Below the pieces are notes generated by a model. It ran no database searches. It was not told the DNA's origin and saw nothing but the letters and a program-made list of their open reading frames with translations. The translations under genes and the position numbers were made by a program. Shown here piece by piece: positions 12,480 through 27,425 of a stretch of DNA of 43,896 bases; position 1 is the stretch's first letter, and each line of letters begins with the position of its first letter. The stretch comes from Trichosphaerium sp. ATCC 40318 (taxonomy: Eukaryota > Protista > Tubulinea), in contig JALMLS010000095.1 in assembly GCA_038496445.1 (NCBI GenBank), positions 1 to 43,896 of the forward strand. Reading direction: 5' to 3'.

Positions 12480-13443
12480 ATGTTAGTTATTTTAAAGTTT
12501 ATTATTTTATTATTTTAATGTTTCCGTTTATTTTTGCGGAGCATTATTAACTTTATGGAAAGAAAAGTTATGGCTGGTATCAAAGAAGGAAAGGACCTAT
12601 GTAGTAGGTTTATATGGTTTATTACAGCCATAGCTGATGGGTTGAAATGATTTGAAAAGAAACAATAATTCCTCAATACGCTATGGTATTTTATTTGTTT
12701 TTGCTCCTTGTGGTTGTTATTTTTATCTTAGTTCTTTTATCCTTATTACCTTTGTCTTTTAAAATGTAATCATAGATATAGATATAGTTTGATGTTGATA
12801 TTTGTTATATCGTCATTAGGTGTTTATGTTTAATTTTTGCGGGTTGGGCAAGTAACTCAAAATATGCTTTTTTAGTGCAATAAGAGCTGCTGCCCAAATG
12901 ATTTCTTATGAGTTCCTTTTGGTTTAGTTATTATTATATTGGTGCTTGAGCAGGTACGTTAAATCTTATAAGTGTAGTTAATTTACAAAAGATACTATTT
13001 TATTTTTATATGCGCCTGAGCGGCAATAATTTTTATAGTGACAATATTAGCAGAGACTAATAGGCCACCTTTCGCAGATTTACCAGAGGCAGAAGGTGAA
13101 TTAGTGTCTGTTATAATGTTGAATATTCTTCATGGGTTTTGTTTGTTTTTTTCTTTCTGATATATAAACATGATTATATTAAGTATTTTGTTTGCCAATT
13201 TATTTCTTGGCGAAATATTTTTTTTTATAATGATTTGTGGAAGGAATTCCTATTTTTTGTATATTAAAAGTTTATTAATAATGCTTATGTTTATTTGGTT
13301 AGAGCTTCATTACCTAGATATAGATATGATCATTTAATGAGTTTAGGTGAAAAACTTTGTTACCTATAACGGTAGGGTTTTATTGTTTAATAGTGAATAG
13401 CTTTGGGAGGTAAGTAATTTTATATGGTAGTTTTTTAGGTTAA
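12480..13443 (+). CDS. nad1: NADH dehydrogenase subunit 1 cryptogene
   Basis: With single-base insertions: [84 protein letters not shown]. Confidence 0.95.
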
Positions 13444-13445
13444 TT

Positions 13446-13988
13446 ATGCGTTGAATTAGAGAGTTTTTGCTTTTGAATTTATTTTAGGTCTTTTATTAAA
13501 TCTTTTGGACATATTTAAGAACTTTTATAGGATCTTGTAAAGATATGGCGATTTGTGGTTTTTATTTTTTTGGTTAAAATTAAGTGAGCGCATGCTGAAA
13601 ATCATTGTTAGATATTTTTGTGTAGATAATAGTGCAGCTGCTGTAAATTGAAGGTAGCTTACGTTTTTTCAAGTTTATTTAAAATCGTAGAATAAGATTA
13701 GAAGGTTTTGCATATAAAAAAAGAGGTAGTTTATTTACATCGTGTAAAATTTTTAGATCAGGTTTGTGGTTAGAAAGAGAGCGCAAGATTTATTTGGCGT
13801 ATACTTTTCGGGAATGTAGATATGCGTAGAATTTTATTAGACTATACTTTTAGAGGTTTCCTTTAAGAAAGGATTTTCCATTAACAGGTTATTATGAGTG
13901 AGATATGATGATCAAGGAAAGGTATAGTTTATGAACGGTAGAGCTAACACAGGATTATCGCATGTTTGATTTTGATATGAATGAGTAG
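13446..13988 (+). CDS. nad9: NADH dehydrogenase subunit 9 cryptogene
   Basis: WLERE.[57 protein letters not shown] after single insertions. Confidence 0.93.
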
Positions 13989-14286
13989 AAAAAATGTGAA
14001 GATAAAAAATTAAAGAAAATGGTAATTTTAGATTATTGTTGTGTATTTTTACATCATCGGGGTTATAATAACTTCCAAAGTATATTAGAAATGTTAATAA
14101 GTTTAGAGTTATTAGAGTTTTAATCTACGTTCTTGCTTTGGTTTTGCAGTCGTAACGGATATTTCTGTAGGTGTATATTAGGTATCATCATAATTATAGG
14201 AGCAGCAGCCCAATCGCGATTGGACTGGCGATATTGTGACAATATCGCGAACTTTAAAAAGTGTTTCAGTAGATATGTATCTTTAA
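13981..14286 (+). CDS. rpl11: Probable ribosomal protein L11 cryptogene (very divergent)
   Basis: C-terminal IVTISRTLKSVSVDM resembles L11 I.GTARSMGI.V. Position at the head of the r-protein cluster fits. Confidence 0.45.
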
Positions 14287-14296
14287 TAAAAGTTAA

Positions 14297-23842: not shown

Positions 23843-24236
23843 ATGATTCAATAGATATTTTATTTTTTCAACAGAAATTATTTTATTATTTTTTACTTTA
23901 TTTATAGTATATTTTTTGTGTTTTTTTTTATATTAAAGGTATCTCAGAAATAACAAAATTGAGGTATGAATTAATGTTAAATATGTACAAGTAAATAAAT
24001 TGTATGTCTAGTTAAACAAAATGTCATTTAGTATAATTTTATTATTAGAAGAGGAATATTAAATTTATCATGTGTTTTTTTGTAACTCTTTTTTGTATTT
24101 AATTTTATGCTTATTAGAATTTTTTAGTTTAGAAGTTATTTTAGCTGACGTACTATTTTATTTTTTGTTTTATTATTATATTTGAACTGAGCAATATTGT
24201 TGGAGGGTTTGGTTCTTTATAGTTTTAAAGCGTTAA
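23843..24236 (+). CDS. atp8: Probable ATP synthase subunit 8 cryptogene
   Basis: MIQ[I]D start, hydrophobic stretch, then ISEITKLR; resembles MPQLD...I..ILKLR. Confidence 0.55.
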
Positions 24237-24240
24237 TAAA

Positions 24241-26208
24241 ATGGAAAGGCTTAATATTATTACGGTTAAAAAAATTAAAAAAATATAAAATAAATGGACG
24301 ATCATGTAATTTCTTATCATTTTAATGGTTTAGGTAAGTAAGCTACGTTGCAGATGAGTAGTTTATGCTATAGAATCATGAAAGTGAGTGCTGGTGAGCG
24401 AGTAGTTTTTGCAGATGGAGGACTTTAGGAGTAGTTATGAACTTAGAAGCTAAGAGAATAGTATCTTAGTTTTCGGACGAGATATAGTATTCAAATAGGT
24501 GATTTTTTATTTTGAACTGGTAAAGTTTTAAATGTGAACGTTGCGCGTATAAAAGTGGTTTTATAGGTGATGGTTTAGTCAATCTTTAGTTGTTAAAAAA
24601 TATATAAATTGTAGTGGGTTGTAGTTTTTGATTCTATAGAGAGTTATTCTGAGTATGATGGACTAATTGATGATTTGGCGAAAAATTTTTAGAGTTTTAA
24701 GGAATGGGAATATATTACATGGGATTCTTATCTTTATAGGAGAAGAATAAGCATATAGTAAATACTGTAATATTATTCAAAGTACAAATGGTTTATTGCT
24801 GGTAATTTAGTTTTACCTTTATAATGCAAACTCAACAAACAAAAGAAATTTGCCTTTATTTTGTTTGTTGGAAATCTATTAGGTCAGTTTGGTAGTAAAG
24901 AAATTGTACATCAATAAAAATAGATTTTTACAATACATAAGGATCCAAAATTTTACAGATTACAAACAATGTGAAACATCATAATTATTATTATCAGCAA
25001 GTTAATTTAAATATGTTGAGAAAAAAGCTCCAGGATTATAAGAAGAACATCAATAGCTCAAGCTTTGGAAACTGTGTTAAAGCAATAGATTCTATGTACC
25101 AATAGGAAAAGTCAAAGGGAATTAGTTTTGGGAGATAGACAGACAGAAAAACAGCAATTTGTTTAGATACATAATACATCAAAGTAGAGAATTTAGAAGA
25201 AAAAGCCAAGATTTGGTGCAGTAAATGTATTTTTAATGCTATTTATGTAGCTATAGGTCAAAAAATGTCAACGTTAAAAGAATAGCATGTTATTAAAAAT
25301 GAAAAATTGTTGAAGAATGTAACTTTAATATGTTCAACTGCAAGTTCAGCAATGGTTATCAATATTTAGCTCCTTATGTAGTACATCTATAGGAGAATAT
25401 TGAAGAGAATTGGGTATGGATGCTTTAATTATATATGATGATTTAAGTAAGCATGCTAATATTTATAGCAAATATCTCTTTTATTGGGTCGTCCTCCAGG
25501 ACGAGAAGCTTATCCTGGGATGTTTTTTATTTGCATTCTCGTTTATTAGAAAGATCCGCAAAATTAGTGAATCTTGGGCTGTATGGCGTTGTGGTTTAAC
25601 GCGCTATGAAAATGAGAACATGTGTAGAGAGATTAGGAGAACTTTAACAGCGTTACCTATAGCAGAAACTATAGAAGAGATGTATCAGCTTATATACCAA
25701 CAAACTTAATTTCTATTACGATGGACAAATTGTTTTAGATACAAACTTGTTTAAAAAAGGGTAAGACCTGCTGTTAATTTAGGTTATCTGTAAGTAGGGT
25801 AGGTCAATGGCTCAAAGTAAAATGATGAATATTTAGCAAAAGATTTAAAATTAGAATTGGCTCAATTTCGTGAGTTGAAGATTTTGCTAAATTTGATCGT
25901 CTTTAGATGAGGCTACCTTAAATTTAATAATAGAGGTCAAAGATTAATACAAATGATGTTCAAAAAAATAAAATGCCGATGCAACAGATCATCAGTTGTT
26001 ATCTTTGTTTGCAGCATCTGAAGTTTTTTAGATAATATTGCTGTAAATAAGTAGCTACTTTTGAAAATATTATGCATAAAGTAAGTATAGAAACAGTATA
26101 TTTGGTAGAAATTGGTTTAAGATAATATAAGAAAACGTCAGTAAAGTTAAATGTAAAAAAATTAAATGCTTTTTTGAAGAGTTTGCAGATTGTTTTGTTT
26201 TAATTTAA
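24241..26208 (+). CDS. atp1: ATP synthase F1 alpha cryptogene with a large insertion
   Basis: EKKAPGII, ELVLGDRQTGKT (Walker A), [47 protein letters not shown]. Confidence 0.96.
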
Positions 26209-26223
26209 AAAATTAGTTAAAGT

Positions 26224-27425
26224 ATGTTGCTAAAGCAGAATCTACGGGGAAAGAGGTCTTTAAGCGTGTAAAGCCGCATGTAACAATAGAACTATAGGGC
26301 ACGTAGATCATGGTAAACAACGTTAACATCAGCAATAACTCAGGTATTATCGTTTTATACAGAACTAAAATTTTAATTATGATGAAATTGATAAAACTCC
26401 AGAAGAAAGGCGCGTGGGATTACTATAAACGCATTACATGTGAATATGAAACGGAAACAGACATTATACACATGTTGATTGCCCAGGACATCAGATTTTA
26501 TGAAGAATATGATAATAGGAGCAATCCAGATGACGGAGTTATTTTAGTAGTAGCTTGACAGATGGTCCTCAAGAACAAACAAGGGACATATAATATTAAT
26601 AAGTCAAGTAGGTATTAAAAATTTGGTGCTTTTTTTAATAAATTAGATGCTATATTGACCCGAATTTAAAAGATTTAGTATCTTTGGAAACTTAGAGCTT
26701 TTAGAAACTTATGTTATGAAGATGTACCTTTCTCTGTGGGATCGGCGCATGAGCTATGAACGAAGTGGAAGAAAAGGGTTTTTCAGAAAATGGCATAAAA
26801 GTGTAAAAGAATTAATGCGCTAATAGATGAAAAAATACCTTTACAGTTAGAAATAAAGATGATCGTTTATAATGCCTATAGAAGATGTTTATACAATTCA
26901 GGTCGAGGTACTGTAGTATCGGATGCATAGAACAAGGTATTGTAAAAAGTGTCAAGATTTGGAATTGGTAGGTTCTGATGTAATAAAAACAACATGTTAC
27001 GTGTAGAAATGTTTCATAAATAATGAACGATGCTATGGCGGGTGAAAATGTTGGGTTTTAATAAAAGTGTAAAAAGAAAACAAGTTATACGAGAATGGTT
27101 TTATGTGATTTAAAAGCGTTGTGCCTAAAAATGAATTTAGAGCGCAGTCTATATTTTGACAAGAAAAGAGGGAGGAAGAAAAAACCATTTAGTTCTGTTT
27201 TCAACCTCAATTTTTTTTTAGAACATCTAATGTTACGGGACAATAAAGGTTTTAAATGAGGATGAAGTAATTTTACCTGGGCAAATGAAAAAATAGAGTA
27301 AAGTTGATGTCTAAAGTTGCGTTAAATGAAAATTACAATTTACAATAAGAGAAGGACAAATACAGTAGGTAAGGAAAAATAATAGGTAAAATCAGCAAAA
27401 GTTGGGAGTTAGATAAATTTAATAG
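26224..27425 (+). CDS. tufA: Elongation factor Tu cryptogene
   Basis: [69 protein letters not shown].G; 3' end lies near the fold junction. Confidence 0.96.

Follow-up and report, generated by a model that had tools for sequence, protein, structure and literature searches.

The 43,896-nucleotide (nt) stretch of DNA analysed here (the window) corresponds to contig C291 in a eukaryotic assembly (G000) of 70.3 Mb and 642 contigs. We examined the genes of its segment 12480–27425, in which reading frames are interrupted by recurrent single-base gaps and for which RNA contigs from public sequencing runs contain additional bases. The window has a base composition of ~73% A+T, and this AT-richness, together with a bacterial-type small subunit (SSU) rRNA and a cluster of tRNA genes, identifies it as mitochondrial DNA. 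All recognisable genes of the segment are on the + strand, namely nad1, nad9, tRNAs, SSU rRNA, atp6, cox3, atp1 and tufA.

Frameshifted genes and structural RNAs

Frameshifts were counted in six genes against profiles of alphaproteobacterial homologues, using a dynamic programme that allowed two-base codons and skipped bases. Single −1 shifts were found once per 27–41 nt across nad1, nad9, atp6, cox3, atp1 and tufA, and conserved motifs switched frame every few codons. There were no +1 shifts in five of the genes and two skipped bases in atp1, located in its poorly aligned N-terminal part. The spacing agrees with a first-pass annotation of this DNA, which had placed single −1 gaps every 20–45 nt in conserved genes, and the individual examples it gave that could be checked are present in atp1 (the Walker A motif at 25146), tufA (26289 and 26315) and nad1 (12599, ~12868 and ~13100).

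The nad1 cryptogene (~12477–13395), the motifs of which were recognised by eye, contained 18–23 single −1 shifts and no +1 shift, and the nad9 cryptogene (13587–13990) contained 10 single −1 shifts in 404 nt. Downstream of the structural RNAs, the atp6 cryptogene (~22062–22709) had 11 −1 shifts within its aligned part (22262–22709), cox3 (22996–23741) had 28, atp1 (~24290–25899) had 40 in 24633–25899, with Walker A requiring G[G]A at 25146, and tufA (encoding EF-Tu; 26250–27399) had 38. The interval between cox3 and atp1 held a hydrophobic open reading frame (ORF) without identity on the + strand, which includes 23976–24003. The only Pfam match to atp1 was a weak one to ATP-synt_ab (E = 4.4e-4) that spanned 10 stops. 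Mitochondrially encoded tufA is rare outside jakobids; it is on record for jakobids, the centrohelid Marophrys and the amoebozoan Vermamoeba.

The structural RNAs gave a similar picture. Approximately 12 tRNA genes were clustered at 19291–20214 (four were called by ARAGORN and more by Rfam), several of them apparently one base short, and covariance alignments placed 1-nt gaps in T-arms (G-UUCGA), in anticodon loops (six-base) or stems, and in acceptor stems. The mitochondrial SSU rRNA followed at 20243–21667 (Rfam RF00177, 401.8 bits), and its covariance alignment contained 1-nt gaps in universally conserved stretches, e.g., AUU-GGUGUAAAG and ACGGGG-GCC. Judging from these alignments, the SSU rRNA is probably edited too, and tRNAs of the 19291–20214 cluster would likewise appear to be edited.

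Single-base insertions in transcripts

Assembled contigs from public runs were compared with the window over 22000–27500. Run X10 is catalogued as metatranscriptomic Illumina RNA-Seq, X7 was treated as RNA, X2, which comes from a different study, was of DNA type, and X1 was cDNA-like, with a SMART template-switch oligo at 23952. X7 provided two long contigs. The first, over 22062–25463, showed 7 substitutions and 100 gaps relative to the window and exceeded the DNA it covers by exactly 100 bases; the second, over 25434–27379, showed 4 substitutions and 62 gaps, with an excess of exactly 62 bases. Since the surplus length equalled the number of gaps, each gap represents one base added in the RNA, without deletions and without dinucleotide insertions. 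Overall, the RNA mapping that the first-pass annotation had suggested yielded 162 one-base insertions in the 5,318 nt of 22062–27379, or one per 33 nt.

The same pattern was present in X10, with 10–21 insertions in each contig of 375–830 nt. One of these contigs (rec 9), over 22000–22784 and hence atp6, exceeded the DNA by 21 bases and had 21 gaps, and two others (rec 15 and rec 16), over 26227–27379, contained 21 and 16 insertions in tufA, so that 37 insertions in RNA compare with the 38 shifts counted there at the protein level. With the insertions, each gene regains a single open reading frame.

At base level, the neighbour relationship and the spectrum of inserted bases were assessed at the 12 best supported of 164 insertions listed over 5.5 kb. 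Contigs of the DNA-type run X2 matched the window across all 12 of these sites with 0 mismatches and 0 gaps. RNA-verified insertions in cox3 (23397–23667, +) were G behind 23396, C behind 23429, G behind 23455, 23503 and 23542, T behind 23559, G behind 23600 and 23625, A behind 23640 and G behind 23664; in the hydrophobic ORF (+) they were G behind 23975 and T behind 24002. The ten cox3 insertions were supported in X7 at a depth of 137/137 (137/296 at 23600) and in X2 at 0 of 5.2. Seven of the ten were present in X10, of which contigs lacked the insertion at 23396 and 23542 and there was no depth at 23559. With the ten verified insertions in place, cox3 23390–23690 becomes one open COX3 frame, provided that TGA is read as Trp. 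An in-frame TGA occurs in this verified frame at 23603–23605, and in the NAD1 and COX3 profiles TGA fell on five columns of invariant Trp (13348, 23323, 23689, 23710 and 23739); together these indicate that the mitochondrial code reads TGA as Trp.

The inserted base was identical to the next DNA base at all 12 sites, for which the chance, given composition, was 5.8e-6 for random positions. The inserted bases comprised 8 G, 2 T, 1 A and 1 C, a G share of 67% in a small sample, compared to 19% G on the sense strand. The doubled base formed a run of one in the DNA at 6 sites, of two at 3 sites and of three at 3 sites. Because 6 of the 12 doubled bases stand alone in the DNA, homopolymer slippage does not account for the insertions. 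Within 23456–23685, a stretch with a complete list of sites, 35 G runs were counted, 6 of them doubled, and no context distinguishing the doubled runs was seen.

Most of what the first-pass annotation had read from conserved motifs is thus found in the RNA: all four bases are inserted, a single base is often turned into a doublet (6 of 12 sites), and the T that it had placed in ACA T[T]C TTT of cox3 is carried by RNA contigs behind 23559. Its statement that the missing base always matches a neighbour holds for the 12 sites in RNA; motifs alone cannot establish it. In frameshift-aware protein-profile alignments, insertions restricted to neighbour-identical bases and insertions restricted to non-identical bases scored about equally, with no clear gain for the former, and base-level site calls from the protein alignment coincided with the verified cox3 sites in only 4 of 10 cases within the part compared. 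Derivation of the neighbour rule from protein conservation alone was therefore rejected. Protein alignments show how many shifts there are and roughly where they lie, but not which base is missing; the rule rests on RNA.

The first-pass annotation had also proposed a new insertional editing system, and here it did not stand, because a rule identical in kind has been published. Yang, Harding, Kamikawa, Simpson and Roger (2017) described, for mitochondrial transcripts of the heterolobosean amoeba BB2, editing by neighbour-identical mononucleotide insertions (PMC5421314). In a literature search that mostly did not extend to subscription journals, this editing rule was not reported outside BB2.

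Two further observations were made on the contigs. A single 3.1-kb contig of X1 (23952–27055) was edited at its first 7 sites only. X7 and X10 shared substitutions (G>A, A>G, A>T and T>A) at 24536, 24746, 25139, 26111, 26370 and 26374 that were absent from X1; X2 was unchanged at 26111, 26370 and 26374 and had no depth at 24536, 24746 and 25139. Either strain differences or substitution editing could account for them; the mixture of types favours the former.

Contig layout and absence of the bases from DNA

The window is a palindromic concatenation consisting of a copy, an 875-nt centre, a copy, a 3.8-kb unique part and a copy. An inverted second copy of 10184–23668 occupies 27497–40981 (−; 13,485 nt, 1 mismatch) and contains the same cryptogenes, and a third, partial inverted copy lies at the contig end (1–9308, −), with differences only in its first 1.5 kb and at the palindrome centre. 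GC skew reverses at both palindrome centres. Positions 1–1500 differ from the internal copy at ~80 positions (substitutions and indels) and the next 7 kb at one; such noise is typical of long-read contigs, the ends of which tend to be poorly polished. Beyond 27385, the DNA-type X2 and the cDNA-like X1 diverge from the window (junction 27385–27497) into sequence of another contig, C318, and X7 probably also runs from there into C318-type sequence. C318 is likewise palindromic, with atp1 at 6625–7002 (−) and 22055–22432 (+). For the junction in the window between tufA and the inverted copy, the choice lies between a minor isomer and a misassembly.

Several features of the segment lie outside the recognised genes. 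Ten perfect hairpins were found in 10459–19251, with arms of 22–69 nt that are 100% complementary and loops of 0–10 nt, all different in sequence and all intergenic (e.g., 19111–19251, 10459–10581, 14606–14700 and 16409–16488); Rfam returned at most sub-threshold microRNA look-alikes for them. A tandem array at 11339–11692, mirrored at 7801–8154 and 39473–39826, has a 48-nt period and 7.4 copies, with a 15-nt sub-unit, AGAAGGAGAAAAAAT. The longest ORF of the window (163 amino acids) lies inside this repeat, which contains ORFs of 161–163 amino acids on both strands. The ~5 kb of 14000–19300 have no recognisable gene and include lysine-rich stretches and a long A-rich tract (18250–18560). A search for large subunit (LSU) rRNA and other known RNAs in 13900–19400 gave sub-threshold hairpin look-alikes only, and no LSU rRNA was present in the window. 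This region probably holds ribosomal-protein cryptogenes too divergent for recognition.

The bases added in RNA are truly missing from the DNA. A long-read consensus that drops bases could be suspected from the palindromic, long-read-style contig with its error-rich first 1.5 kb, and from the missing base being identical to its neighbour, as in homopolymer under-calling. We nevertheless regard a sequencing or assembly artefact as exceedingly improbable, because the two 13.5-kb inverted copies agree (1 of 13,485 positions differs), the exons of nuclear genes in this assembly are long and open and the contigs of X2, an independent run, have no gaps relative to the window. In addition, half of the 12 sites are at single bases and not in runs, and the sites of BB2 were confirmed by PCR of DNA and cDNA (PMC5421314). 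Transcription from a separate intact copy has hardly any probability either. An edited 37-mer spanning two verified sites was absent from the whole 70-Mb assembly (≤2 mismatches), of which the unedited form had four copies, two in C291 and two in C318; X2 contained the unedited form only. Edited-form 17- and 21-mers were found on neither strand of the window, and the edited 37-mer was not found in Joint Genome Institute (JGI) metagenome contigs. Thus, neither a second gene copy nor a guide-like template was found for the edited forms in the window or the assembly. A window ORF with true ATP1 segments had no exact match among Logan-derived proteins, nor did an exact-protein look-up of a window ORF give a match. 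Ribosomal frameshifting on broken genes, for which there is a precedent in the mitochondria of Perkinsus, where frameshifts are decoded at the ribosome, is just as negligible and is unneeded, since the RNA contigs themselves contain the extra bases.

Editing mechanism and comparison with known systems

These results make it very likely that the window is mitochondrial DNA whose genes are essentially all cryptogenes, expressed through neighbour-copying mononucleotide insertion editing of the BB2 type. Editing is probably genome-wide, at well over a thousand sites. We lean slightly towards a mechanism in which a phage-type mitochondrial RNA polymerase would read one template base, most often a template C, twice at specified places during transcription. 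Reading a template base twice would explain both that the added base copies its neighbour and that only +1 events occur. Polymerase stuttering is what we infer here and what Yang et al. proposed for BB2. The sole T7-like single-subunit RNA polymerase gene in the assembly (G000:C209:80072–81521, split into several exons) is a candidate for the stuttering enzyme.

A number of points weigh against this interpretation. X10 alone is on record as RNA, and the DNA label of X2 and the RNA label of X7 are guesses. The RNA runs came from samples other than that of the assembly, with ~99.8% identity apart from the insertions, and the data are at the level of assembled contigs. Both the neighbour rule and the G share (8/12) rest on 12 of 164 insertions. 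X1 contained edited and unedited forms of 23173–23321 at depths of 264 and 638, respectively; the unedited forms may stem from DNA carry-over or else from abundant unedited transcripts or precursors.

One alternative is that editing is real but post-transcriptional, with separate machinery cutting or extending the RNA and adding a copy of the neighbour, and no stutter of the polymerase. The comparable depths of unedited and edited 23173–23321 in X1 would fit such a process, as would the half of the 12 sites that lie outside runs and are unexplained by ordinary slippage. We consider it improbable, since it is not obvious how a free-standing enzyme would sense the identity of the neighbour for four bases, guide-like sequences were not found in the window (both strands) or the assembly, and the unedited form in X1 may be mitochondrial DNA carry-over; furthermore, reads without the base at sites amounted to only 0.33% in BB2, pointing to co-transcriptional action (PMC5421314). 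A further alternative is that the machinery is kin to the co-transcriptional insertion of Physarum, retuned from mostly C to neighbour-copying, if the organism is amoebozoan. This is unlikely but draws on the tufA of Vermamoeba mitochondria, on the alignment of TGA with invariant Trp, and on a density of one site per 33 nt that is close to the roughly one insertion per 25 nt of Physarum mRNAs. On the other side, C made up 1 of the 12 insertions, net added length equalled the gap number and left no room for dinucleotide insertions, and in Physarum the inserted base matches its neighbour only sometimes.

With neighbour-copying editing of the BB2 type as the preferred reading, the novelty lies in the organism and in how dense the sites are. 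The organism is not BB2, as judged by tufA, repeat size and density, and is probably not a close relative of it. An EF-1alpha-like nuclear exon (a paralogue) had at most ~60% identity, to scattered eukaryotes, and the strongest nuclear PF00009 match examined was EF-1alpha-like. An atlas look-up of the RNA polymerase exon returned broad taxa only, and Hsp90 is divided into exons below the length cut-off. That the organism has no relationship to BB2 and may be an amoebozoan, and that neighbour-copying editing therefore arose at least twice, here at Physarum-like density, is a tentative suggestion to which we give a little less than even weight. If it is true, the contiguous 70-Mb nuclear assembly, the public RNA and the BB2 data would allow a comparative hunt for the site-selection machinery. 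A second organism with the rule, with denser sites (~1/6 of G runs doubled in the cox3 stretch), one phage-type polymerase gene and a contiguous nuclear genome, provides a comparative handle on how a polymerase or a partner protein picks hundreds of exact one-base sites without a visible motif or guide, a question common to BB2 and Physarum: factors common to BB2 can be sought and site contexts compared over far more sites. There is also a practical warning, in that such mitochondrial genomes resemble junk to gene finders; Pfam barely detects atp1 and misses tufA.

Among known systems, U editing of kinetoplastids shares with the present one that cryptogenes are made readable through insertions. 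It differs in using U only, in also deleting, and in acting through guide RNAs after transcription, whereas here four bases are inserted, with no deletions and no guide-like matches in the window or the assembly. Lavrov et al. 2016 reportedly observed U insertion in short poly-U tracts in the mitochondria of calcaronean sponges. There, too, the inserted base lengthens a run of the same base, but it is U only and in existing U tracts, while the insertions here are mostly G and often at single bases. Stuttering in the paramyxovirus P gene is similar in that the base added is a copy of the one that has just been read on the template, with G added beside G, and reduced bacterial endosymbionts show transcriptional slippage at long homopolymers. 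Both require a slippery homopolymer, affect one or few sites and give mixed products; here there are hundreds of sites, which are not confined to slippery tracts (a lone base at half of the 12), and the contigs look uniformly edited.

Physarum and other myxomycetes are closer, with very dense mitochondrial insertions in mRNA, rRNA and tRNA, a phage-type polymerase and no guide RNAs. In Physarum the insertions are mostly C with some dinucleotides, and a match to the neighbour is not required (PMC5421314); here C is rare, dinucleotides are absent and the neighbour rule applied at all 12 sites.

BB2 has 475 insertion sites (84% G, 7% A, 5% C and 3% U) affecting 43 of its 44 protein genes, the two rRNAs and half of the tRNAs, with no motif, no guide RNAs and 0.33% unedited reads, for which its authors propose polymerase stutter; its mitochondrial genome is 119 kb with a 49-kb repeat, and tufA is not in the gene list (PMC5421314). 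Both organisms have single-base insertions only, each identical to an adjacent encoded base, with G dominant and all four bases occurring. In both, editing extends to almost all protein genes, there is no obvious motif or guide, and the mitochondrial genome contains a large inverted repeat; rRNA and tRNA are edited in BB2 and are probably edited here, as the 1-nt gaps in alignments would suggest. The two differ in that tufA is mitochondrial here, the repeat is 13.5 kb compared to 49 kb, and the G share is 8 of 12, a small sample, compared to 84%. BB2 has approximately one site per 150 nt (475 sites in ~70 kb of unique sequence, by our arithmetic) as opposed to one per 33 nt here, such that editing by the same rule is ~4.5 times denser in the present mitochondrial genome.

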